Position numbers and translations under genes: made by a program
From: Dimorphilus gyrociliatus
Lineage: Eukaryota; Animalia; Annelida
NCBI GenBank assembly: GCA_904063045.1
Contig: CAJFCJ010000028.1
Location: 124,001 to 188,000, forward strand
Direction of reading: 5' to 3'
Length of the DNA stretch: 64,000 nucleotides
Notes under the pieces: model-generated
Seen by the model: only the letters and a program-made list of their open reading frames with translations
Database searches by the model: none
Told to the model about the DNA's origin: nothing
Shown here: positions 7,710 to 30,364 of the stretch, one piece after another
Layout: every line of letters begins with the position of its first letter
How positions within the stretch are numbered: position 1 is the first letter of the stretch

Positions 7710-9302
7710 ATGGAAGAAAGATTACTGGAGAGGCTAAAATCCTCTAATTTTGCAACTGCAACAGATATTTTAGCAAAGATCAATCTTGATTTCGCGCAGT
7801 GCATGAGTTTCGCACCGGACACAAAGAGTCTAAGAACCTCTGTTGCTAAGTTTATATTGTCAAAATTGGAGAGTTTGGGTTGCAATGATCAAGTTGAATT
7901 TAGCACCACGGCTTTAAATACGTTGAGGATAACTTGCCGCGATAAAACCGTGCTATCCGGTATAGAAATTGATAATGTCATTACAACTTTATTTAGATAT
8001 GGACAATTTCTTGATCAAACTGAAAAAAATCCCGAAAAATTAATTATTGAGGCCCAAAAATGTCTCTATAATATTTTGCATTTGTCACAATCAGCCAATG
8101 AATTTTGCGCAGCTCATGGCATCCTGGATGGTATCTTTTCCAGAATTAAAAATCATGAAGAATACTGCGGAGAAATACAAAAATTGGACTTTATAATCTT
8201 GTTTTTTGTTACTGCGAAATGCCCTCGTACGAGATCGTCTATTGCAGTTGAAACAGATTATTTCGCAGTTCTCGTAAAAACTCTGGAAAGGCTATCATAC
8301 AAGAACAACTTTCCAAAAAAGAGGCTAACCGAAGAAGTGGACCTGATCTGCGAGATTTTAAAATTATCCTTCAATGGAATATGTAATTTGAACAAAAAAT
8401 CAACTGATATTAATGATAGCACTAAACGCTTTGCAATTACACTAAGAGACTTATTATTAATAAAGAATGCTCCGGAAACACTTATTTCTAATGTTATTAA
8501 TGCTTGGACTTCTATGCCAATATCAACTTATGATACACTTGTTGAATGTTGTTCAACTGATGCCGAAAAAAGAATCAGTTTTGAAGGAAAAGACCTAACA
8601 GCTATACAAGTCATTCTCGATTTCCTTCAAACTAGGTTAGATAGATGCAAACTAAATGAAAATATCAGCATCAGGGATGAAGTAAGTCCAGTTATGATGT
8701 CGCTAGTACAATTTTGCCGACATCAGAGATACGTAAGAAAGTATTGCAGATCTATTATCCTACCACCCATGACAACTGAAGTTCTCACCTTACCCGAAGA
8801 GGGAAATTCGTTTAGAAACCACCTTTGCAGACTCTTAACACACGTCTGCATGGAAGTTTGTAAATTATCTACTGAATTATTGTTTGTTATGTGCAAAGAG
8901 AGGGTAAGCAGGTTTATTAAGTATACCGGTTACGGAAATGCCGCTGGAAAATTAGCCGAGAGTGGTCTATTGATTCCAACTAATGTAAAAAGTGAAAACT
9001 ACTCCTCGGAAAGCGAGGATTCCGATACAGAAGAATATGATCAGCTAAAGGCTGATATTAATCCTGTTACGGGTAGAGTGGAAGAACCTAGAGAGGAAGT
9101 TCAAATGAGTGATGAACAAAAGGAATACGAAGCTATGAAGCTTGTTGATGAGATTGATAAGTTGATGAGAAGAGGAATTATTACACCGTCAGTTATAGGC
9201 GAGGATGGTCGGCCTCAACCTGCACAACACGTTAGCCAACTCCTTGATAACATTGATGTTGGACGAAGAGCTAGAGGAGAAAATGGCAATGATTCTGATT
9301 AG
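7710..9302 (+). CDS. RIC8: Synembryn / RIC-8 G-alpha chaperone and GEF, single exon, 530 aa
   Basis: ELLFVMCKERVSRFIKYTGYGNAAGKLAESGL, CK2 site region YSSESEDSDTEEY, INPVTGRVE and MSDEQKEYEAMKLV. Confidence 0.95.
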   Translation: MEERLLERLKSSNFATATDILAKINLDFAQCMSFAPDTKSLRTSVAKFILSKLESLGCNDQVEFSTTALNTLRITCRDKTVLSGIEIDNVITTLFRYGQFLDQTEKNPEKLIIEAQKCLYNILHLSQSANEFCAAHGILDGIFSRIKNHEEYCGEIQKLDFIILFFVTAKCPRTRSSIAVETDYFAVLVKTLERLSYKNNFPKKRLTEEVDLICEILKLSFNGICNLNKKSTDINDSTKRFAITLRDLLLIKNAPETLISNVINAWTSMPISTYDTLVECCSTDAEKRISFEGKDLTAIQVILDFLQTRLDRCKLNENISIRDEVSPVMMSLVQFCRHQRYVRKYCRSIILPPMTTEVLTLPEEGNSFRNHLCRLLTHVCMEVCKLSTELLFVMCKERVSRFIKYTGYGNAAGKLAESGLLIPTNVKSENYSSESEDSDTEEYDQLKADINPVTGRVEEPREEVQMSDEQKEYEAMKLVDEIDKLMRRGIITPSVIGEDGRPQPAQHVSQLLDNIDVGRRARGENGNDSD

Positions 9303-15201: not shown

Positions 15202-16280
15202 TTAACTATAATCATCTTCATCTTCATTGTTAGTTTCGGTGAGTTGTTGAGAAACGACTGTTTGAACACGTTCCCATTCTTGTTGTTCAAATTTTGCCAA
15301 GGATTCCTTAGCTTGAGCAAACAATGCTTGTTGTTTCCTGAGTAATTCCTCTTCTGGTATGCCTATAAAAATAAACAGATTAAGAATTTACATCTATTAA
15401 TATTATATAAATTATACATTATATATAACAGACATAACATGAAATAAATAGTGTTATGTATAGTTTGTTTTGGTATTTTTATCATTTTTAAGTCTTTCGA
15501 AGAAAATGAAAGACTATACGGACGATTGTTGTCCTCCAAAGCGTAGGAAAACTGAATACTTGTATCATATTGATTTAAAAAAAAAGGAGAAAAGAAGTAG
15601 TTTAGTAAATGTATGTATGAGCACGAGATTCACATTAGAATAAAGTAGAATAGATAAAAAAAGAATTTTCTATGTATTTATATTTCTAATTTATAAAATG
15701 TTTTTTAGTCTGCTTTGTATAAATAATTATATTGAACATTGAAAACTACGTTTTATATTTCTATAAATGGAATAAAATATAGGCTACTGATAGCAATTTT
15801 ACATATCATTAGCTTTTGAACATCTGCTAATCTTCAATTTCAGCGTATATAACTTTTATATAATTTTTTCTTTTCAAGTTAATGACTATATACATTTTTG
15901 CGTCTATACTAATATATATATATATTATTTTGACTCTCAAAATAGTTACCTAAATCAGCCAATTTTGTTGCCATTCGCTTTCGTTGCGCTTGTGTAGCCT
16001 TAGATTCTTCAAAAACTGCTTGGGCTTCGTCTATATATTCTGAAAAACCCAGAGATTCCAAAGCTTTTAAAACATGCTCTGGGTTGATTGTTTTCTTTTG
16101 TTGTTTAGCGCATATATCGTTTGCTTCGGAAGCTAAAAGATGAATAAATTCGGTACAGCATTGGGCTATTAGTTCTCTAGCATCATTTGCAACTCTAATA
16201 TTTGGGGCCAATTCTTTTATCATTTTGTTCAGTGCAGCTCTAGGTAGTTGAAGTTCATCTTCTTCCCCTTTATCTGCCAT
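15202..16280 (-). CDS. DR1: Negative cofactor 2 beta / Dr1, 2 exons
   Basis: Histone fold LQLPRAALNKMIKEL...ELIAQCCTEFIHLLASEANDIC...KKTINPEHVLKALESLGF; second exon GIPEEELLRKQQALFAQA. Confidence 0.95.
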
Positions 16281-16703
16281 TATTGGCGATGATTAACGGC
16301 AATCGGACTTACTTTTGAGCTCCTGAGGAAACAACAAGTTGAAAGAATTATAAGGAATGGATATGTAATCCAATAAATTAGAAATTAGTTTAAAAGCAGC
16401 AAGTAGGTATTTTAGAGCAAAATTACGAAAATTCCCAAAGATGTAAGGTCAAGGACAAAATTTGTCTTAACTATTTTCGTATTTAATACATTTTAGAGTT
16501 TATTAAAGTTCTTTTAAATTTTAATAGCAATAAAGATATTAATTAATAAAATATTTATTAGAAAAAAATATTTTCATATTCGATTTTACGAAGGTTAATA
16601 TACATAATTTGAATACTGAAAGCGTATAATTGATCATAACACAGTATTAAAACGCAAATGTTCTCAACAATAAACATATAATTTATTTGTAAACGAAATG
16701 CAT

Positions 16704-18262
16704 TCAAACTCTTAAATCAATTTCTTCAGGTGATTGTCTACGTTCTTCTTTTGAAGAAGTTTGTGGAGTTCTTTTCACTTTAGCTGACTTACAATTCTTT
16801 AGCCTGGATCTATAATTTTAAATAAGCCATTGGATGAAATTTTATTAATTTAATCTAAAACAAACCTCTTTTTATATGATATTTTCGGTTTATAACTAGC
16901 AGTAATAATGGCACGTGTTTTCATTATAACTGGCATTGTATGACCCTGTTCGAGAATAAGATAGTATATAAATAAATAAGGTATTCATTCAAACTTACCT
17001 TAAGCGTTGGACACTTTCTCATATAAGCATTCTGAACAGTTTCCATTGATTTACTCTGTAATCTCATAAACTTTGAATGCTTATCTATTTCCTTGACTAA
17101 ATCTTGTTCAGAAATTTTATCAAAATTGATTGTAACACCCTGTTTTTAATCAAATTGAAAGAACAAAAATCATATATATTAATACATATTTAGATACATG
17201 AGTCACTTTATTATATTTTTATTTATATTTACCTTCCAAGGTATTTTTTCATAGCTATATTGATCATGTGTTAAAGGAGAACCAATTTTAGCTGTTTTCA
17301 ATTTATGCATATTATTTTCATAGCATTTTTTGTAGTCGATAATCAATGAGCATAGAGTCTAGATTAGAAAACAGACAATAAGCAAATTCGTTAAATAAAT
17401 AAATAAAGGAAAAAAAATATCAATCAAACCGGAAAAATGAAAGGTTTGTACATAAGATCCGATTTCCTACTCATTCCTAGAGCACCATATTTTCCTTGAT
17501 AGCATAATCCTAATACAACATGCCTATATGTGTTTCCAGAGGAAGTACTTTTGAAACCTATAGTAAATCTTTCCAATCCGTTCAGATTATTCGTTAAATA
17601 TCTTTTTAAAGTTAAGGATTATCCAAAGCATTAAAAGACTTAGCAACGTTTTTCAATAATACATATTTATGTAAAGTATATCTTCAGTTAAAATATTACA
17701 AAATAGTACCATCATTTCAAAAAAAAGGATACATTCCTAAAATAACCGCCTCTAAACATTTGATTGGTAAAGATTCCTTTATCATTTCTTTTGCTAAATT
17801 CATCAAACTGAAAATAGAAAATCATTGCATGATTATTAAAATAGACTATCTTATAAAAAGAAAATTACCCTGTAATTGGCCTATATTTTCCAACGTCGAA
17901 AGATTGCGTATCAGTAAAGTTGTAATGCAACTCTTTCATATATCGCTGAACGAGATTGACTTTATGTTGCATCTCGAGACAATTTGATATTGCTGTTTAA
18001 ATAACATTTAGTACTTAGTATATGGCAATCGTCTATTCTGCTGGTAGCTTTGTTTACATTTACCTGTTCTTGCTCTTGCCAAGCCTATACTTGGTAAATT
18101 ACTATTTTTTTCAGATTTTTCACCTTCTAAAGAAGATTTTGAGGCAAATCTATGCAATTTCTCCCATGCGAAGTCATCAACAGGAAACCCATTTTTCTTA
18201 ACATATATTAAGACCCTTCCATCATAATATTCATCTTCAGAGGGAGTTTTGGCAGATGTCAT
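16704..18262 (-). CDS. VASH: Vasohibin (tubulinyl-Tyr carboxypeptidase), multi-exon
   Basis: Spliced translation gives VQRYMKELHYNFT, EMIKESLPIKCLEAVILG (catalytic Cys), RFTIGFKS...YRHVVLG (catalytic His), GALGMSRKSDLM and C-terminal IDLRV. This gene is mostly missed by the ORF track. Confidence 0.9.
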
Positions 18263-18320
18263 GTTAAAAACTTGAAAATCATGCAGTATTCCCTTCAATA
18301 TTGTTTATAAACGGCGTTAA

Positions 18321-18407
18321 GGAAGTGACGTCATTTATAGAATTTCCTACCAGAGAACACAGCGGATGTTACGTTTACAGAATTTCCCATCCTAATGCGC
18401 ATGCGCA
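18321..18407. promoter_or_regulatory. Bidirectional promoter (VASH / VMP1) with ETS-CRE and NRF1-type motifs
   Basis: GGAAGTGACGTCA at 18321-18333, CGGATGT at 18363-18369, perfect TGCGCATGCGCA at 18396-18407, and AGAATTTCC twice 40 bp apart. It lies between divergent start codons. Confidence 0.6.
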
Positions 18408-18687
18408 AGCCGACAGGCGTTTTCCAATCCCATATTTAGCCGATTAAATAAAAGGCTATATCATCTACAGCAACGTGTCAAGAAACTTGTCCATGGAATG
18501 CTAATATAACTATCACTTAGGTTAGTACGGAAATCTTACCCGATGACTCAAAATTGATTTTGAATATAAACTACACACCTGTGTCTAAGTGTATAGTAAT
18601 CCAGCAGATGTTCTGCTCAGTTAACGTGTTTTATCGACAGTTTTGCATGCGTTTGTCATTGATCAAGGTTTAAAATTTATTAACAGA

Positions 18688-20538
18688 ATGTCGGTAAGTC
18701 TAGATTTTCAGCTAATTATCTCATTTGTATACAACATAAATTTAAATTATTTGGATACTATTCTTTTTCTTCACTACTGTAAAATATATTACATAATCTT
18801 ATAGTATTAAATATAACTAAGTAGGTGTATCAAGCCTTAGGGATGACGTATAGCTTTAAAAAAAACCGTAACCGGTAAGTAATTTTAGGTCGAGTCATTG
18901 ACTCGAATTAGATAAAGGTCATCATCTTGCGATTATTTTGAACAAAGTACGATGTTAAGCATGGAGTGAAGTTCTAGTGCTCGTAAGCTTACGTATTTAT
19001 ATTTTTATCGTATGTAAGAAGACTTTAAGACTTTGAACCAACTAATAGGCCATATAACATGTATTATAGAACATGCAAGCTGGTAATGAACAATGTGTTT
19101 TACAGATTACAGAAGAAGGAATGGGTCGGCAAAATAAAACTGTTCGTTCAAGAACATCGACTAAACAGCGAACACTATCAATGAATGGCTCTAATCAGAA
19201 TATATTGATGAATCCCTCTGAGAGGAAGAATATCGTCTTATGGCGTCATCCAATAACAACTATACAATATTCTGCACTAGAATTACGAGATCTGTTGATA
19301 GAGGGAATAAAAAAAACGAATATATACGTAGTTTTGAGTTTGCTTTTAATTGTGGCCACTTGTACGCTCTCATACATATACGTTCTACCTGAATGGCAGA
19401 TTGAAATACTCTCCAGTGTATGGAAAAAAATACTATGGTATTCATGGTGGGTTGGATTAGGGATATTATCATCAGTTGGTTTTGGAACTGGTCTACACAC
19501 CTTTGTCCTGTATCTAGGTCCATTTATAGTACAAGTTACCCTAGCTGCCTATGAGTGTAATTCTTTGGACTTTCCATCGCCTCCCTATCCTGAAGATGTT
19601 ATCTGTCCTGAGAGTTCTAATTCAGCAGGAGGAGGAAGTACTATAAATGTATGGAGCATTATGTCTAAGGTTCGGTGGGAAGCGATATTCTGGGGATTAG
19701 GTATTTATCGTTTTATTTCTCCAATTCCTCTCACGTTAAGATAAACAACAGCTGAAAAATCTTTTAGCCGAACATAAAAAAATTGTAACATTAGTAAAGT
19801 TTCTCTCAAATCAGTCTATAAAACTAATATAAGAAAAAGATCACTGTACGCATTTTGTTTCTAGTTGTTTTTTTTTCCAAAAATATAAATTATAAATATA
19901 TATATATATATATATTTTTTATAGGTACTGCTATTGGTGAACTACCTCCTTACTTCATGGCTAGAGCTGCTCGTCTATCTGGCCAAATTGATGAAGAAGA
20001 AAAAGAAATAGAAGAACTTCACGAAAAAGGTCATTTAAGCTTTATGGAAAGAGCCAAAATTGCCGTTCATGACTTTGTTCAAAAAGTTGGATTTCTCGGT
20101 ATTCTCTTGTGCGCTTCTATCCCTAATCCACTTTTTGATTTGGCCGGCATAACTTGCGGACATTTTCTTATACCTTTTCCAACATTTTTTGGCGCAACTT
20201 TGATAGGAAAAGCAATAATTAAAATGCACATTCAGCAATTATTCGTCATCTTTATATTTAGCGAGCATCACGTCGAACAAGTAATTTCTCTTATCAAATT
20301 CATACCTAATGTTGGATCTAAATTGCAAGCGCCCTTCAAAGAATACTTGAATAAGCAAAAAGAAAAATTACATCAAAGTTTCGGTACTAAGCAACACAGT
20401 ATAACGCCCTCTTGGATATCATGGGCTTTCGAGAAATTAGTACTTATAATGGTTATTTATTTCTTATTGTCAATTGTTAACTCTTTGGCGCAAACTTATC
20501 ATAGGAAATTATGTTCATCTAAAAAGCAAAAGCAATGA
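18688..20538 (+). CDS. VMP1: Vacuole membrane protein 1; probable 6-nt first coding exon (ATGTCG), then ~19108-19700 and 19924-20538
   Basis: [38 protein letters not shown]|[19 protein letters not shown] and [22 protein letters not shown]. Confidence 0.95.
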
Positions 20539-21680
20539 TCATTCCGTAGAAAAAATTTGTTGAATTATTTTTAATTTTAAATAATTAAAGAATATAAATA
20601 AATCGACTCTAGTCAGTGGATAATTTTTGCTTTTGGCTGCACTTAATTCTAACTTAAAATTAAGAAGTTTAAAAAACAAAATATGTAGACAATTCCTTTA
20701 TTTAACATGTTATATAAAAGAAATTTACTCGTTTTAATCTTTTTTGAGAAAATCTTCTGTTCTCACTTTTCTCAAATTGAAATTATTTAATTGGAATATC
20801 TAATAAATATGTATTAATATACAGTATATATATTTATATATAAATTGAATATGAATTGACAAATCTGTTGTTTATTGTTGATATTCAACATTTTCACGCA
20901 TTTATTCCAATCTCTTTAATAGACCTGGAATATTTTGTAAACGATCTATGCATAGTTTATATGTTTGACTGTATTACATGTATAAGGTAAAAAAAAAACT
21001 TCCTTGTTAATTAGTATATTGAATAAAACGATCGAATACGTTACCAACATAATTAACCTGTATCAAATGCATCCGAATACATAGTCAAGTATTTCCGGAG
21101 TATTCCTGTTACAAGTTAGTAATGTTTAATGATAGGATTTTTCTTTTCACAAACCTACGTTAGGCTTCCGTCCTGCTAAAGTACAAATTTGTAAAGAGAC
21201 AGCCCTTGAATTGCGTATTTTCTTTTATGACACGAGCAGGAACTAGTATAAGCTAAAATGAGAATTTACATGTTTATAGCAGAAGTTTTTAGTTTTTTGT
21301 TTATTTTTCATATTAGCTTTAACTTACGTTTGAAGATACTAACATTATTCTTAAAGCTAACATAGTATGAAAGAAAATTCGTATTAAAAATATGTTTTTA
21401 ATATACTTAAACACTCTATTCATATTCATTATTTTGTACATTTTAAGATTTTGACATTTTATCCTTAAAAAGCAAAAAACATATTTTGATGATATTGTAA
21501 AAATCATAACTATTTAATAAATGAGTAAACTGGGGGTATTTTCAGTCTCTCAACAGTGTTCTTTCGAATAGGGTTCGTGTTTTAAAATCGTGACGTATAG
21601 GCCTTTCTCCTTTGTTAAATCTTAGTCAGTTTAACTTAATTTTTTCCCGTCATAAATTTGAGCGCCGTTGAGGGACTATC

Positions 21681-24213
21681 ATGTTTCGGATAGTATTATT
21701 TCTTCTAATTCCTATTGTTTCTACGGATGTTACTGAGAAATTTCTAACGAAAATACAACAAGAAAATGTTGATATTATATTTATATTTGATCGGTCGAAT
21801 TTATCATCTAAAAACAAATTCTACATAAATCAAAAGCCATTAGTTAAGATATTTATAAGAAGTTTTATGAAAATCAGTGAAAAATATTCTCATGTCGGTA
21901 TTATATCATATGGAAGAGACGTTACAATTGAATTTGATGGAATTTCAAAAAATACAAACACCAGCAAATGTTTTCTTGTTGATAATGAACAATTTTGGAA
22001 TAATATTGAATATTCAAAATCTCCAAATTCCAACAATGGATCCGTTTTACATGAAGCTCTTCAGGCAGCTATAGATATTTTTGAGATTGCTAAAACTGAT
22101 AGTTCACCTAGATCTCGTATCATCTTTCTCTTCTCCAACGGAGTCCTGAAAGAGGACGAACAATTAGTAAACAGTAAATTTAATAAACTAAAACAATCAA
22201 CAATAGACGTTTTTGTAGCTGGTAAATATTTATTGTTAATTTGGATTCAAATTACATTCACCTAGAGTTATTAATTTTATAATTTCTGTTCAATAACAAA
22301 GGTAACGAAGGGGGAAGTGGTTTGGCGGTAAACGATGGTGGATACGGTCGAATTGCCTTATGGGAGAACAGGCTTGATCAAAAGCTTACAATGACAATTG
22401 GTGATAAAAACAACCATGACAAAAAATATAGTAGTGTACCATACAAAAAGGACTGCCTAAAAGACAATGAAACACCGTTGTGTAACGTTATTTCGGGATA
22501 TTCGTCTTGTCTGTGCTCGGCAGGCTATTATCGCAAAGAATTCGATTGTTCAAGTAAGTACAAGAATTTAAGTTTTACCAATACTCCTGTTAACGAACTA
22601 TGGCAACTATTCTTCTCCAATGAATAGAGTGCGAAGTTAACACCTTCAAGGAAACTATTGGAGACGGAAAATGTATTAGCTGTCCTCCTGGATACGGTAC
22701 TAGTTCTAAAGGTTCAACGAAAGGAAGCGACTGCAAATGTTTGGAGGTCAACACGTGCAGAGGGAGTTGCGACAATAAAATATGTAAGAACGGAAAATGT
22801 AATCTAGGAAGTTGCGTTTGTAATGAAGGATATACAGGAGAGACTTGCGAAGAGAAGATAAACTACTGTTCAACTAATCCATGTAAAAATTATGGACAAT
22901 GTAAAAGTCTATTTTTTGGACCATTTTGCTATTGTATTAATGATTATGAGTAAGTAGAATATTCGTATTTACTACTTTATCTATTAAAATAATATAATAT
23001 TAATTATTAATTATTTCTTCAGAGGTGAATTCTGTCAAAATAGTATTAGTGAATGTGGAAATGATTTATGTGCCCCAGGTTTCAGTTGCTTAGATAAAAT
23101 TTATGGATACGATTGTATTAACACATCGTTGATAATGACATCAACAAAGCGTAAGCTTTATTTGTCAATTAATCATAATATCTAGGTTAATTTATTCAAT
23201 TTTTATTGTTTTTATTTCATCATTAAAGTTCCGAAAGAAGAGGACAATAATACATCAATACAATTTTTAATAATTATCATCTGTGCTCCTATTGGCGTTT
23301 TGTTCGTCATTTTGATTATAAGTATCATTGGATTTCAAATATGGAAAAGGAAGAGAAGGGTTATATTACGCTCTAGATATGCCCAAAATACACATGGACA
23401 AAAGTCTCCTCCGCAACTGCCACCACGAATGCCAGGGAATATTTTTTCGGAGGTTTCCAAAATTGCGGCTAGAACTACTACAAGTGTTAAGCGAACATAC
23501 AGAAGAGTTTCTGATTCTGTTTGGAGGGTAAGAAGTAGAAAGGATGAAATGGATGATGTTTACGCAAACAATCCAACGACATCTACGAAATTAAGTCACA
23601 GAGTTCCACCTCCACCTCCTCCCCCTAAAAATAAATCAGCTGTTCCAGACTCTATCTATTCAAACTTGGTAAGCTTTTTCAATATAACTATAGATATACG
23701 AGTCGTTGTGCCATCTGTAATTTATTCTTGTTAAAACTTTATTGTTAACATTTTATCCACCAGTCGATATGACTATAACTTATTAAGTTTAAATAGCCAA
23801 ATTTTTTCTCCTAGCCTTGCTTTCGAAACTTTGAAAGCTGGTTGCCGTTTTTCGAAGAAACAGTTGATTTTTCAAGAGTATCCATGCTGGGCGTTATAAA
23901 GACTTCGACAGAATATATATTAGATACTTTGCCCTGTCCAACTGAAAAGGATATAGCAAGTCTTCGAAGCGCAATGGAGCAAAAGAGAAATGGTCTTATT
24001 ACAGTTCTTAAACACTCGTATATAATATCGTCAAATAACGGAACTGAAATGCACATGAACGCCAAAGGAACTAATAATAGAGCTCAAATTCTTTATATAA
24101 TTAAAGCATCATCGTATTTCATCTTATCAGGAACAACACGGAATAATTTTTCAACAGAATGTCTTCAAAAAGCCAAAGAAATAGCATCTCATCTAGCAGG
24201 TTTTGAAAAATGA
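21681..24213 (+). CDS. Single-pass membrane protein: signal peptide, vWA, Eph-receptor-like Cys-rich repeat, EGF repeats, TM, Pro-rich tail and C-terminal profilin-like domain; exons 21681-22221, 22302-22553, 22628-22949, 23023-23150, 23229-23668, 23815-24213 (693 aa)
   Basis: All five introns are GT-AG with matching phases (1,1,2,1,0), and the CDS is 2082 nt. Domain motifs: DIIFIFDRS (vWA), CSAGYY...CEVNTFK...CISCPPGY...GST...DCKC, CVCNEGYTGETCE, TM IIICAPIGVLFVILIISIIGFQIW, and last exon SWLPF...EIASHL. Confidence 0.82.
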
Positions 24214-24861
24214 AATAAGATAAAAGTTCAACGAACTGAGCGATTATTTTAATATTTTTCTTACTTTATTAATGGATGTAAAACATTTTCTCGAAAAACT
24301 ATTTTCAGTAGTTGTTTGTTTATTTTCGTACTTTTTTTAATACACTTTTTATGTTTTGTACACAATAAATGTTTTAATTCTCGGACGATTGTTGATAAAT
24401 TTAACTATTATTCATGACTTTCTAAGTGCTATTTTTTACTTTTTAATACAGATTTTATCTACTTTTCTTTTAATTTTAACCATCTTTTACCACTTAACCT
24501 TCCTCCGCTTTTTTTCCCATTTATATTTAAAACCATCTTTGAAGGAGTATATAGATAATAATTAGATATATTTAGAAATAGATCATTTATTGATTAATAC
24601 ATTTAATAAAATAAGTCACCTTGTATTTTTTGTTTTGCTTTCATGAAGAGAAGAAGGTTAATTCATTTATTATATTATAGATATCCTTTATTTGTCCTTA
24701 TACAATTAGCATGTGCAGAAAAACATAATTTTGACGTAAACAAAAGTGTTTTAGTTGATCATAAAGCGTTATTAGCATGTATACTGTATATATAAATATA
24801 TCAATAATAGACAAAGTAGGCATGTTAACAATATTAAGTAACATCATCATATATTTCCTTG

Positions 24862-27475
24862 TTAAACGCTGATTTTTGATTCATAAACTGCCAAAAGAGT
24901 TAATGCGGCTATTCCAATTAGGGCTCCCATATTTACAATAACAATAAATAAAACTTTCCTTGAATACTTTTGTAAATTTCTTCCTAACTGGCCAATCATA
25001 TTTACTAAAGCAATGTAAAGGAACATACCACCAGCAACCGCAAAAATCCATTGTCGAACGCTTTCGTCAACTGCCAATGCAACTCCAACAATTCCACCAA
25101 CAAAACAAGATAAAGCCGACAAACCATTTAATAAAAGTGCCTTCTTCAGTGATAAACCACAATCTACCAATAAGGCTAAGTCGCCGAATTCATGAGCCAA
25201 TTCGTGTATGAAAACTGCTATAGTTGTACTTATTCCACTGGTAGTTGATAAGGAAAATGCAGCACCTATTTGAACACAATTTAGATTTAAATTACTAATG
25301 TGACCAACTTTTTTATAAAAGAAACTCGCCTATAATAAGACCATCAGCAAAATTATGAACACCATCTCCTATTACAATCATAATGGACGTAGAATGACGA
25401 TGATGATCGTGAGAATGTTGTTCATTCGTTTTACCCTTTTCTCTCATAGAGATATCAATGTCATTGCTGTTTTCTTTTCTTGACGATGAAATTGCTACAA
25501 TGACCAATTCCAAAATGAAAAAAAAATAGATAGCTGCCAGAATTCCTAAAGCTTTTTGCGTATAAGGCTCCAAAACTACGTCACCACCTTCGTGTTCGTG
25601 ATCATGCATACCAAAAGCTTCAGGCATTAAATGTAATAGGGAATCGGTAACTAAGACGCCAAATCCTGATGCAACAAGAGTAGAAAGGATCACTTCGAAA
25701 TGTGAAAACTTGTAACAAGGTCGAAGAACAATTCCGAATAGAGCACATATACTAACAATAAATACTGCTAACATGGTATAGCCGTATTTTTCAGCTCTTG
25801 TAGGAGGTTCCTTAACAACTTTCTGTTCTATTGGCTTCTTGCATGAACCGAACATTTGTTGGTGAATTAAAGCTGGACAAATTTTTTCCAATTGTTCTCT
25901 ATTAACTTTATCTTTGAATTGAAATATCTTTAGTAAGTCGCTGGATGAATAGCAAATAGAATTTATTTTGGGTTCTTCATGCACTGAACGCTTTCTTCTT
26001 CTTCTGTGATCGTGACCTTCGTGACCGGGTTCTTCAGTAGATTTATTTGCAGCGTTACCGATTTCAAGTTTCTCTGTTATATGTTTAAAGTTAGATAAAT
26101 CAATTGATTCATGTGCCTGCTTTCCAAAGTGTTCAAAAATTGCAGAAGAAAATTCTGTAGGAAATGGAAGAGTTTTGTTTTCAATTGAACAATTTTTTGG
26201 TTTATACTGTAATTTTGATAAAAGATAAGAAGTCAAAGTTGATGATATTACGACGGGTCTGCTAGAGATGCTGCCACTATTGGCTTTATATAATAAAATA
26301 TCAACATTAAAACAATCTTGTTCATGCTTATGTTCGCCTTCATGTTCATGAGCTCCTTCGTCATGCTCTTCATTATGCTCTTCATCATGCTCTTCATCAT
26401 GATCGGCCCCATCCTCCTTTAATTTTTTAGCTAATTCATCAACTAGTTTATACACTTTACTATCGCTGTCAAGCTTTTCTGTAAAAATTGATTTGCTAGT
26501 ATCAAATTCAGCTTTCTTTTTGTTGTTTGTTGCATTACAAAGATTAGGGAATGTCAAGGATGTTTGTAAAATAATTGCAGCAAACTTATCAAAATCTTGT
26601 TCTTCTAAGAAAGTTTTGTTGAAGTATTGAAGAATTTCCTCCTTTTTAAGGCAATTCTAAAGAATAATAACTCTTTTTAGATTTTGACAATCCATACATG
26701 CAAATACAGAAAATGCAGCAAAGACCAGAATATGATTTTGAATATTTATACGCCTAAACTTTTAACGGATATCAGCTATTTTTTATGGTTTTGCATATGT
26801 CCTGAAAGAAATTCACTATAAGGAAATAGGATAAAAAAGAAATTGGTAATTTTAAAAACCAGTATATTATTAATTTAGTAGCCTATATTTAACAACTGAA
26901 AACATTATACATTATATTTTTAAAGCATTATAAAAGAGATTGTAAGAAGGAATAAAGAGGAAATGTTAAAGTTAAACAGAGTGAAACGAAATACATGACT
27001 TGTATGTTTGGGAAAGGCATTGAAAAGCCTATAAAAAGACATATACATTTGTTAAGGTATTCAGAATGAGTCATATTATTTAGATTCACTAGCCTCGGTT
27101 AAGTTTTCATTATATAGCAAGAAATTCAAAAAAATGTCCCTCATTATCATTTTATATACTTAAAATTCTAATTTTTTACCAATGAAAAAAAAAGGATGAC
27201 AATTTATGCTAATCAACTTAAAATATCGCAAATAATAGAAAAAGAACGTTTTTATTTACCTGACATATTTTTGATAAATTCTCTTCGCAGTTTAATCTAT
27301 TAAAATATCTGTGAAGAATAATCTCCAACATCGAATCGGTTATAATATTTTCTTGAAAATTGGTGATATTTTCATTACGAAGTGAATTTATAACTCTATC
27401 GAAGGGATGTTCTCCTCTGATAACAGTTATAAATGAAAAACATAAAAGGGCTTTTGAAACCAAAGAAAAACACAT
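24862..27475 (-). CDS. SLC39A: LIV-1 subfamily ZIP zinc transporter with a long ectodomain (ZIP4/ZIP12-like); exons 27475-~27260, 26656-25330, 25265-24862
   Basis: Signal peptide MCFSLVSKALLCFSFITVIRG, ectodomain NRLNC...ICQ|NCLKKEEIL, CPALIHQQ, DSLLHLMPEAFG, IVIGDGVHNFADGLIIG|AAF, HELAHEFGD and IFAVAGGMFLYIALVNM. His-rich linkers. Confidence 0.9.
26357..26402 (-). repeat. Coding 12-bp tandem repeat encoding HDEE-HDEE-HNEE-HDEG
   Basis: CATGATGAAGAG-type units on the minus strand within the ZIP ectodomain. Confidence 0.75.
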
Positions 27476-28303
27476 TTTTTGCAACTGCTACGTGAAGCAA
27501 AAATGAGCTTTAAAGGGGTGAGTTGTGAATTCCTTGGCCAAGAGCGCATCCAGAGGAAAAATTCATTATGTCGTTGTTTAATGACGAAATTGAAAAGTAT
27601 ATCTCATTCTATCTTTAATTTTATTAAATATAAATTATATATTGTTAAATTATCTAAGTATAGGTAGATAATTCATTATATGTAAACGTTGAAACAATAA
27701 TTTAATTCTATAAATCGCCCCCTCGCCCAACCTTTAAGTCGGCTAAATGACCTATTTCAAGTTTTTTTGCACACAGCTACAATAGTCATTATTGTTACTC
27801 AAATTCTTTGACCTCGTCTATCACATGAAAAGAATAATACATTTTTACTTTATAAATCGCTATTGATCCTTAAAAATTATTCTATTCAAAAAATTATTTT
27901 ACACAATGTCGTGCAATACTGTTTATTCGATTTTCGATTTACTTTCATAGAAACTAAGTTTAGGATCTCAATTTTTTTTTGGTCAAAATTAGGCAGATCT
28001 ACAGTTAGTCTTATATATTGACTATTGTATTTTGTATTAAATGGATAATAAATGGTAATCTTATCCCATTCCCCTTATGACAACGTTCCTTATTTCACTT
28101 AATTCTATAGTAATATTAATTGTAAAAACTGGTAAAGAAAACAAAATAAAAATAATGAAGCATTACAATATTGATCAGTGAGTAGGTATTAAAGACAATA
28201 ATGAATACATTTTATACTATGACCATTTCAGTAGTGAATAACAACGTTTAACACTGTTTTAACTTGATCAAAATTTCATTATAAGAACAAAGTTTTTCAG
28301 AAT

Positions 28304-28395
28304 GGGACAGTGGTCTAGGGGTATGATTCTCGCTTTGGGAAGGCTCAATACTTCAAATATGCGAGAGGTCCCGGGTTCGAATCCCGGCTGTCCCC
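28304..28395 (+). tRNA. trnP-TGG: tRNA-Pro(TGG) with a 20-nt intron (28340-28359) at position 37/38
   Basis: Acceptor stem GGGACAG/CTGTCCC, A-box TGGTCTAGGGG, anticodon arm CTCGC-TT-TGG-G|T-GCGAG, B-box GGTTCGAATCC. The mature length is 72 nt, and a T-run terminator starts at ~28401. Confidence 0.95.
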
Positions 28396-28668
28396 TATAA
28401 TTTTTTTTTTCAATGAGGTTTTTTGGTATTGTTTCTTTATACATATATAATATCATGTTACGAAAAGGTAGCTATTTAGTGATTTTTTTACTAGTTAAGT
28501 GTAATTTAGTACAGATTTCATTTTTTATATTAAAATATAATATTTCTAAATAAAATTTATAGTAATACGATAAGTGATTAAATAATAGAGATTAGTTTTG
28601 TTATATTTTTAAGCACTACTAGCATAATACACACCTGGCTCTTGAAAGAAACACACAATTGTATAATA

Positions 28669-30364
28669 ATGCTAATTAAGTTAACTTTGACGGTTCTTAC
28701 AGGTAATGAAGAATGTAATAGATTAAATATAATCTATCTAAATGGTATTACTTTCTAATTATAGTTGTCCGTATCTCGGTCACTGATGTAATACCAAAAC
28801 CTTGCGATTTGAAGTGGGCTGAAGGAGTTTGGCTGGGAGCTGACAATAATAATGAACTCCAAATAAGAGACAACCATCTAACGTTATACGGTTTCGATTG
28901 GAAATGTGAAAAAGAATGGGAAGGAAAGAATCTATTCCAAAGTCGTAATGTTCATGGATCAAATACAACTACAGATTATCTTATTTGCATTCAATTAAAG
29001 AAGCTAAATAAGAATAAATTATTTTATGGAATGACCACCAAGACAAAAAGTAATACATTTCTTACAGTTGAGGCTGGTCACGAGAAACCCTTAGATTATA
29101 CTTGTAACGATAAAATTGACGTAATAAACTTTTATATTTATACTAGAAAGGAGACAAAATTAGACAGATCAACTTGCCCTCTTCCATTAAGAGAGCATTG
29201 GTCTATCGAAAGTCCTTGTAAGGGTAAATTAGAAGTTTGTTTAGACATTTATACAGTTGAGATTAATCCCGATAAAAGCTGCAAAGAAGAAAATCTAAAA
29301 CAAAGCTTACAACTTTACTGCCTATATAGCGTTAACTACGGAGGCTATAACTATACTATTGTGGCAAATAGCAATTACAAACCGGAAGAAGGAAAACCGC
29401 AATTCTATTGCATGGTAGGCCTAAAAAATTATTTTATATTATAATATATTGTAGTACACAACAAGTGTTATCTAAAAGAAAATGCTATAAATAGATAATA
29501 AAGAAGATGTAGGTTACTAATAAACTAGAATTTTATTAAAAGAAAGAAGAAAAAAGTTGATTAAAAAACAATGTAAGATTTCATCTATCTATTCCTATAT
29601 ATATATATATCTTTATAAAAGAAACTAATAAAAGGATATATAATAATTAAAGAAGAAATTATTAGAAATTTAAATATAATAAATAGGACATAAGGGGAGA
29701 ATATGTATTATAAGTATAAATATAAAAATGCATATTTGTATATATACTGTAAATTTATAAATGTATATATATATATATATACAGTATGTATGTCATATTT
29801 CTATATTATTTTATTATAGCTTTTTATAATTCATAAAAGTTTCCCTTAGTCTGCAGATTTTTAGTGTCTTTATGACAGAAGAATACCTAGTTAGCGATAT
29901 GTATATATTGTATCTACAATTACATAATATATATATATATATATATATATAAGTTAAAATACTAATAGTAGTAAAACTTGTAAAAAAAGATCTTTATCCA
30001 TATTTTTCATAGTTTAAATGTTTATTCCTTAGCAATCGAAACGAACGAACGGGAAGAATAGTACCGAATTGAAAATTGCTAAAATTGAAAATCCAAAGAA
30101 ATATTATTGCGAAATGTTTCCAGATCCGGAAAATGTGGATTATCATATAAATGCTAAGTTAGGTAAGTAAATAAATAAATATATATATATCTTGCATATG
30201 TCTATTGTCATGTATAATAGCACGTAACGTATGCATTCTATTCAGAAAAAGAATGCTACGAAGATATAACTGCACAAAAAGGGAGGACGACAGGAAATGC
30301 TGTTGTTTTAAAATCAAATTGCGGATTATTTATCTTATTAGCAATGTTTATTAATCTTTATTAA
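28669..30364 (+). CDS. Orphan Cys-rich secreted protein, probably GPI-anchored, 4 exons
   Basis: Signal MLIKLTLTVLT|VVRISVT; exon 28765-~29415 with spaced Cys; exon ~30033-30161; terminal exon 30246-30364 ends ...TGNAVVLKSNCGLFILLAMFINLY (hydrophobic C-terminus). Splice phases are consistent. Confidence 0.65.

Follow-up and report, generated by a model that had tools for sequence, protein, structure and literature searches.

Locus, gene model and receptor architecture

The window analysed here is a stretch of 64,000 nucleotides (nt) from the annelid Dimorphilus gyrociliatus (GenBank assembly GCA_904063045.1, contig CAJFCJ010000028.1, positions 124,001 to 188,000 of the forward strand), and the gene of interest, located at positions 21681-24213 of its plus strand, encodes a predicted adhesion-type membrane receptor whose last exon is probably derived from a profilin (Table 1). 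Exhaustive enumeration of the nearby GT donors and AG acceptors recovers a model of six exons that encode a protein of 693 amino acids (aa). In an exhaustive protein search, this model is letter for letter identical to the database protein P0001, with 100% identity over the last exon. P0001 is the public Dimorphilus gyrociliatus entry DgyrCDS13800 (CAD5125599.1; A0A7I8WBZ5), which has no functional name and whose precomputed public Pfam list contains no profilin entry. The gene model is already public as an uncharacterised protein, and the profilin-like domain has been missed by public domain annotation. The enumeration and the identity to the public protein bear out an earlier note on this DNA, in which six in-phase exons were spliced into a 693-aa open reading frame (ORF). 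The phase-0 intron before the last exon, the in-frame TAG directly upstream of that exon and the absence of a Met before its SW motif, all pointed out in the same note, are found in the sequence as well, and the peptides quoted there are present in the protein. Exon 6 directly follows the TAG codon that belongs to the acceptor, has no ATG ahead of the SW motif and contains its first Met at residue 24. Retention of intron 5 leads to an in-frame stop at 23734.

Table 1. Coordinates in the window of the exons and other features of the receptor gene (X4 is the transcriptome run described in the next section; L001 carries the orthologue from a related species)
Feature	Position	Strand	Content and evidence
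Exon 1	21681..22221	+	signal peptide (aa 1-15) and most of the VWA domain; Pfam VWA; joint 22221|22302 in X4 contig 6
Exon 2	22302..22553	+	end of VWA, linker, start of the cysteine-rich region; gene model, joints in X4 contig 7
Exon 3	22628..22949	+	ephrin-receptor-like cysteine-rich repeat, EGF-like domains; Pfam, contig joints
Exon 4	23023..23150	+	last EGF-like domain, membrane-proximal stalk; gene model, joints, conserved in the L001 orthologue
Exon 5	23229..23668	+	stalk, transmembrane helix, basic cytoplasmic tail (net charge +16); hydropathy, transcript joints
Single transmembrane helix	23264..23332	+	aa 427-449; Kyte-Doolittle hydropathy, maximum 3.35 at aa 427-445, followed by WKRKRR
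PQLPPR (SH3-ligand-type PxxPxR)	23411..23428	+	PPxLPPR in both species
Seven-proline run	23606..23626	+	aa 541-547, some 20 residues N-terminal of the profilin-like domain; the orthologue has six prolines
YSNL at the end of exon 5	23657..23668	+	within DSIYSNLP, identical in both species; fits YxxL and pYxN type motifs
Intron 5	23669..23814	+	146 nt, GT..AG, phase 0; absent from X4 contig 7
Exon 6	23815..24213	+	132-aa divergent profilin-like domain and stop codon
3' untranslated region	24214..24430	+	AATAAA near 24367; X4 contig 7 ends at 24430

The N-terminus of the protein is a hydrophobic signal sequence, MFRIVLFLLIPIVS. The von Willebrand factor A (VWA) domain encoded by exon 1 (PF00092) is recognised with 36.6 bits (E = 6.7e-9), above the gathering threshold of 23.8, and is also called in the orthologue from a related species that is described below. 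An intact metal ion-dependent adhesion site (MIDAS) of such domains has the form DxSxS ... T ... D. In the motif scan, both species have DRSNL (21789-21803, aa 37-41) instead of DxSxS and SNG (aa 152-154) where TDG is usual, that is, the metal site of the VWA domain is degenerate. In view of this degeneracy, metal-dependent ligand binding of the integrin type appears doubtful. The rest of the ectodomain consists of an ephrin-receptor-like cysteine-rich repeat and three EGF-like domains; in exon 3, Pfam reports Ephrin_rec_like (E = 1.6e-7) and EGF_Teneurin (E = 1.6e-5). An ectodomain of this make-up is typical of matrix-binding and adhesion proteins.

Since the transmembrane helix is followed by the positively charged stretch WKRKRR, the C-terminal 244 residues are cytoplasmic, and the protein is a type I single-pass membrane protein. 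The cytoplasmic tail that connects the helix with the last domain consists of 112 residues and is basic, with 23 K/R against 7 D/E. The PxxPxR motif, the proline run and YSNL are all kept in the tail of the orthologue.

Transcription and conservation of the junction between exons 5 and 6

Run X4 (labelled 'organism A') was treated as a transcriptome because its contigs lack introns. Contig 7 of this run (1759 nt, word depth 163) covers exons 2-6 with all four GT..AG joints; it has flanks of at least 255 letters around the 23668|23815 joint and continues past the AATAAA signal. The junction, which the earlier note had proposed to verify in transcripts, is accordingly present in spliced form in an assembled transcript contig. 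In the X4 depth bins, the depth over intron 5 is zero, and no loose end at 23815 is reported among the X4 contigs.

The only other database relative of the exon 6 product is P0002, a 123-aa ORF call with 47% identity that is encoded on Logan contigs L001-L003 from a related species. The neighbouring genes in the window and on L001 are the same, namely, those for a histone-fold protein, VMP1, the VWA receptor and a ZIP transporter, with amino acid identities of 95% for the histone-fold protein, 84-95% for VMP1, 47-53% for the VWA gene and 47-73% for the ZIP transporter. The '123-aa protein' of L001 starts at a GTG codon, which is an artefact of the prokaryote-type ORF caller; the exon really opens at the AG acceptor 9855|9856, 27 nt upstream. 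The complete orthologue on L001 is a six-exon model of 687 aa that has the same domain order and aligns with the Dimorphilus protein over the full length with 48% identity (51-55% in the ectodomain, 33% in the tail and 45.5% in the last exon). In both species, exon 5 ends with ...DSIYSNL and exon 6 begins with P..(N/K)(S/F)FESW, in the same phase 0, and exon 6 of the orthologue also has no start codon for a stand-alone protein. Because the junction, its phase and the missing start codon are shared by the orthologue, the fusion is a conserved feature and not an accident of one assembly.

Outside these two species, no orthologue was detected, either among 1.84 billion representative proteins or by word-index searches, for which the domain, its profile and the whole protein served as queries. 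Specifically, the word-index search with the domain gave no match, the search with the two-sequence profile retrieved only P0002, and the exhaustive phmmer search retrieved only the protein itself and P0002; the search with the full-length protein returned only matches driven by the EGF-like domains (from starfish, tunicate and metagenome).

The fusion of the profilin-like exon to the receptor is real, expressed and conserved. Exon 6 could instead be a separate downstream gene, with its own promoter or expressed by trans-splicing, and the fusion an artefact of annotation or assembly, considering that profilins normally are stand-alone proteins, that the in-frame stop at 23734 inside the intron would end the receptor, and that the orthologue appears as a 123-aa protein in the output of a prokaryote-style ORF caller. 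This explanation is largely refuted and we consider it extremely unlikely: the joint from 23668 to 23815 has long flanks, the intron has no coverage, there is no loose end at 23815, no ATG is available before residue 24 in D. gyrociliatus or before about residue 54 in the orthologue (where the ORF call itself starts with GTG), and the residues at the junction are kept across species. A variant of this scenario, in which a downstream gene receives its AUG from a spliced leader, was rejected given the missing loose end at 23815, the presence of the cis joint and the conservation of the junction. The judgement in the earlier note that the last exon is unlikely to be a separate gene agrees with both the spliced contig and the orthologue with the same junction and no start codon.

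Several other features of the locus were observed. Gene order is kept over at least 13 kilobases (kb) between positions 15945-29438 of the window and 779-18154 of L001, and divergence is very uneven, with 46-53% identity in the receptor and much of the ZIP transporter against 84-95% for the histone-fold protein and VMP1. Intron 1 of the Dimorphilus gene (22222-22301) is missing in the L001 orthologue, which has an extra intron (8770-8845) inside the equivalent of Dimorphilus exon 3. On the minus strand of the window, a spliced antisense transcript (21328-22262) overlaps the whole of exon 1 of the receptor gene. It is represented by X4 contig 5 (2566 nt, depth 270), which covers 21511-22147 and whose joints skip 22146-22261 and 21357-21510 (CT..AC on the plus strand, equivalent to GT..AG on the minus strand) to reach a 29-nt exon at 21328-21356. 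As this region contains no minus-strand ORF longer than 55 aa, the transcript looks like a non-coding RNA or a long untranslated region. Two loose ends of X4 contigs, before 21997 (255 letters) and before 22998 (33 letters), match nothing in the 64-kb window, and neither position is a splice site. Fragments of the receptor gene (23242-23625 and 23922-24174) that are identical or 97-98% identical to it occur at low depth in the RNA runs X1-X3, which carry invertebrate, coral and marine metagenome labels; the worm or a close strain is therefore present in such samples. In the exon 6 fragment from X3, a marine metatranscriptome with 97-98% identity, four of the five differences listed are synonymous third-position changes and the remaining one is R109Q; together with the 45.5% identity of the exon between the orthologues, this speaks for constraint on the last exon.

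Affinity of the last domain to profilins

The earlier note described the last domain as profilin-like from a comparison with human PFN1. In its place, the domain was compared directly with 37 canonical profilins, which were gathered from metagenome contigs with a degenerate DNA pattern for the profilin N-terminus and all of which are strong matches to PF00235; the same pattern found no match among viral contigs. The order and spacing of the profilin motifs reported in the note hold against this set. The joint alignment is colinear from end to end, from the SW motif to the C-terminus: S8-W9 of the worm domain fall on S2-W3 of the profilins, F/Y12 on Y6, I28 on I22, Y34 on W30, G60 on the invariant G62, Y69 on Y70, and I123, H/Y126 and L/F127 on L119, Y122 and L123, respectively. 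Both the domain and the canonical profilins end five residues after the (Y/H)(L/F) pair. The identity of the domain to the canonical profilins is 8-17%. The polyproline groove of profilins is formed, in human numbering, by W3, Y6, W31, H/Y133 and Y139. Among the corresponding positions in the two orthologues, W9 is invariant, residue 12 is F or Y, tyrosine (Y34) takes the place of the tryptophan, residue 126 is H or Y, and residue 127 is L or F. The end of the C-terminal helix differs between the orthologues (SHLAGFEK and EYFDSLKK), and the terminal aromatic residue is not conserved.

Profile comparisons place the domain closest to profilins with scores that stay low. In Pfam, Profilin (PF00235) comes first with both proteins. 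Residues 47-128 of the Dimorphilus domain match profile positions 44-123 (12.8 bits, E = 0.13), and in the orthologue residues 8-129 match positions 2-124 of 127 (17.8 bits, E = 0.0037); both scores are under the gathering score of 25. The Pfam check suggested in the earlier note thus returned the expected family, and did so below the level at which it would be assigned. Against a hidden Markov model of the 37 profilins, both domains score only 3.2-3.4 bits, a value that is reached by only 15 of 2000 shuffled sequences. Comparison with the profilin profile by hhalign gives P values of 0.061 in local and 0.027 in global mode over 120 columns, in the expected register. In a language-model search of the ESM Atlas features, profilin clusters occupy all of the first 40-41 places for either orthologue (score 0.92, 199-201 of 256 features), and after them the next named families reach at most 0.80, including a LAMTOR3/Roadblock cluster at 0.76-0.79.

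Structure prediction is compatible with these results. The secondary structure predicted by AlphaFold2 from the two orthologues alone (H6-15, E26-28, H44-58, E64-70, E92-98, E101-105, H114-129, where H is helix and E is strand) is already in the profilin order, although no profilin sequence was supplied, and agrees with that of a profilin-guided model. The latter, computed with the 37 profilins in the alignment, reaches a predicted local distance difference test score (pLDDT) of 85.5 and a predicted template modelling score (pTM) of 0.80. Foldseek aligns it with TM-scores of 0.65-0.77 and a probability of 1.00 to solved structures, namely, profilins of plants, yeast, amoebae, mites, humans and Asgard archaea and the poxvirus A42R protein. 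Because the alignment behind this model presupposes homology to profilins, the match indicates compatibility rather than proof. Of the structural check outlined in the earlier note, the part carried out without profilin sequences yielded a model too poor for Foldseek, and the profilin-guided part gave matches to solved profilins that are partly circular.

A number of points weigh against the interpretation of the gene as a receptor with a profilin-derived domain that binds proline-rich partners. Apart from the Pfam scores below the gathering level, the hhalign probability is 0.9%, for a query profile of two sequences with an effective number of sequences of 1.46, and searches of the sequences in the Protein Data Bank (PDB) with phmmer and hmmsearch retrieve no profilin, only chance matches (V antigen, a BIR protein and a glucan synthase). 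The AlphaFold2 model from the two orthologues alone has a pLDDT of 42.9 and its Foldseek matches are noise, and the fold of the guided model, given the homology presupposed in its alignment, does not count as independent evidence. At the position of the most conserved profilin tryptophan (W30/31), the domain has a tyrosine (Y34); the alignment shows no recognisable GKKG in the actin-contact loop, which has a 3-residue insertion in the domain. Divergent profilins such as PFN4 have been reported to bind neither actin nor polyproline. Finally, the transcript support for the gene comes from a single run and from its assembled contigs rather than raw or long reads, so that rare isoforms may have been missed.

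An alternative is that the domain is not related to profilins at all and represents another small alpha/beta domain, such as Roadblock/LC7, longin, a PAS-like domain or a new one, with the resemblance resulting from chance and shared topology. All profile scores are indeed below threshold, PAS, Roadblock and designed folds turned up among the noise-level matches of the unbiased model, and the ESM search also returns the LAMTOR3/Roadblock cluster (0.76-0.79). Such an origin is nevertheless decidedly unlikely, as Profilin comes first in Pfam for both orthologues and is covered colinearly over nearly its full length, profilins fill the first 40-41 places among the language-model neighbours and are separated from the next named family by a large gap (0.92 against at most 0.80), and the SW..aromatic motif, G60, Y69 and the (Y/H)(L/F) pair fall on invariant or near-invariant profilin columns, with the stop codon at the profilin end. 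Profilin ancestry of the 132-aa domain is very likely in our estimate. The domain is probably profilin-derived, yet it stays under every curated family threshold; of the profilin-like receptor fusion proposed in the earlier note, the fusion is established by the transcript contig and the orthologue, whereas its profilin-like character is probable, with scores below threshold.

Possible origin and role, and comparison with known systems

The observations are best explained by a single gene for an adhesion-type receptor with a profilin-derived terminal exon, whose product is proposed to hold proline-rich partners under the membrane; we regard this explanation as likely. Exon 6 holds exactly one profilin-length unit, with ESW in place of MSW at its beginning and a stop codon five residues after (D/S)(Y/H)L. 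Because the exon contains exactly one such unit, in which E replaces the initiator M, capture of a terminal exon appears to be the simplest origin. Most likely, a profilin gene located downstream on the same strand would have lost its start codon and would have been captured as the terminal exon of the receptor gene. A search of the 64-kb window with the 37 profilins (tblastn) detects no canonical profilin gene.

With respect to function, we infer that the domain retains part of the aromatic polyproline groove (W9, F/Y12, Y34, H/Y126 and L/F127). The partly kept aromatic residues of the groove, together with the proline run about 20 residues upstream, suggest binding of proline-rich partners, which the domain would hold at the membrane beneath the receptor. 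Candidate partners are the proline run of the same or a neighbouring receptor molecule, and formin and Ena/VASP-type proteins; binding in cis could act as a latch, and binding in trans could lead to clustering or recruitment of a polymerase. G-actin or phosphoinositides are further possible ligands. Binding of a ligand outside the cell might in this way be tied to local actin assembly or receptor clustering inside. Engineered human PFN1 keeps its activities when it is tagged at the N-terminus via a flexible linker (PMC9249392), so that tethering through a disordered tail seems compatible with function.

A different outcome of the same ancestry would be a profilin descendant that has lost both actin and polyproline binding and serves as a lipid-binding or interaction module, in sorting, clustering or endocytosis, with no direct role in the handling of actin monomers. 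As the actin-contact loop is not recognisable, a non-actin role of the kind seen among divergent profilins is a serious alternative, even if we consider the complete loss of both activities rather unlikely. The identity of only 8-17% to canonical profilins, the change of W30 to Y, the actin-contact loop with its 3-residue insertion and no GKKG, and the dissimilar ends of the C-terminal helix in the two orthologues are all in line with such a loss, as is the fast evolution of the whole gene (47% identity, against 84-95% for the neighbouring VMP1). On the other side, W9, the aromatic residue at +3, Y34 and the aromatic/hydrophobic pair H/Y126-L/F127 are retained, and the proline run is conserved about 20 residues upstream in both species, which is the pattern expected of a retained polyproline groove.

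A more far-reaching version of the proposed receptor function is a working tethered profilin, which would stay bound to the proline run of its own or a neighbouring receptor until it is freed by ligand binding or by tyrosine phosphorylation of IYSNL, and would then deliver actin monomers, or recruit formin and Ena/VASP-type polymerases, at the site of receptor binding. Perhaps it would belong to a wider spiralian set of anchored or N-terminally extended profilins. This version appears unlikely. The coupling of matrix contact to actin, PIP2 (phosphatidylinositol 4,5-bisphosphate) or polyproline partners that was put forward in the earlier note is a putative one of the same kind. If the domain does work as a tethered profilin, it would provide a link within one polypeptide chain from matrix contact to actin assembly, and spiralians may use the profilin fold for a second role at membranes, provided that other extended profilin-like proteins of this clade turn out to be genuine.

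The usual view of profilin is that of a soluble, separate regulatory protein that reaches membranes only with the help of lipids or proline-rich partners. A receptor that in nature has a profilin-derived domain in its tail, next to a proline run, would represent a new way to localise profilin activity. It would also clearly exemplify how a housekeeping gene can give rise to a captured terminal exon. No natural transmembrane, membrane-tethered or fused profilin came up in literature searches, in agreement with the statement in the earlier note that this architecture is undescribed, although the gene model as such is publicly available under an uncharacterised entry.

Compared with profilins proper (PF00235; PFN1-4 in vertebrates, chickadee in Drosophila), the worm domain has the same size of about 125-132 aa, the same N-terminal SW-x-x-aromatic helix, the same order of elements, alpha-beta-beta-alpha-beta(5)-alpha, the conserved G60 and Y69, and a C-terminal helix that ends with (Y/H)(L/F) five residues before the stop. 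The difference is in the context: profilins are free cytosolic proteins, whereas this domain, which has no initiator Met, is encoded by the last exon of a gene for a type I membrane protein of 693 aa. Profilins characteristically bind G-actin in a 1:1 ratio and catalyse its nucleotide exchange, and have poly-L-proline and PI(4,5)P2 as further ligands.

Among receptors, integrin beta subunits share with the worm protein a ligand domain of the VWA fold, EGF repeats, one transmembrane helix and a tail tyrosine motif that is linked to actin via adaptors, with a weak language-model resemblance (0.70). In contrast to integrins, the worm receptor has no Integrin_beta (PF00362), PSI or Integrin_b_cyt domain (Pfam, E up to 10), its MIDAS is degenerate, and its presumed actin-side module is in its own chain, whereas integrins recruit the actin side through talin and kindlin. 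The anthrax toxin receptors ANTXR1/TEM8 and ANTXR2/CMG2 have type I topology; their extracellular VWA domain binds matrix proteins, and their cytoplasmic tail engages the actin cytoskeleton. Neither Anth_Ig (PF05587) nor Ant_C (PF05586) is detected in any exon product of the worm gene (Pfam, E up to 10), and the ANTXR proteins, conversely, have an intact MIDAS, no EGF repeats and no profilin fold. The nearest language-model clusters to the full protein, which can serve as leads only, are VWA2/AMACO, matrilins and collagen VI-like proteins (0.69-0.73). These combine VWA with EGF domains but are secreted matrix proteins that lack a transmembrane helix and a cytoplasmic domain.

Profilin folds placed behind other sequence do exist in predicted proteomes, as indicated by models in AlphaFold DB and by Asgard archaeal proteins. 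The best structural neighbours of the guided model in AlphaFold DB (E = 3e-5 to 2e-3) are V4ALL6 (175 aa), R7V5E9 (173 aa), A0A3S1BHV8 (482 aa) and A0A1I8FTI4 (362 aa), predicted proteins in which the profilin fold is C-terminal, behind 54-355 extra residues; none of the four was retrieved by sequence search with the worm domain. The shape search of the ESM Atlas returns Asgard archaeal fusions, for example, of TrmB with a profilin-like domain, and no cluster with the VWA-profilin architecture was found in that database. In the actin assembly systems built around formin FH1, Ena/VASP and WASP, the proline tract and profilin are on separate proteins, whereas the tail of the worm receptor has both. 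A polyproline run and a profilin fold are also combined in one chain in the engineered chimera of a proline-rich domain (PRD) and profilin, PDB 8bji, the arrangement predicted for the worm receptor. Altogether, the fusion is most aptly described as a known domain in a new architectural variant.

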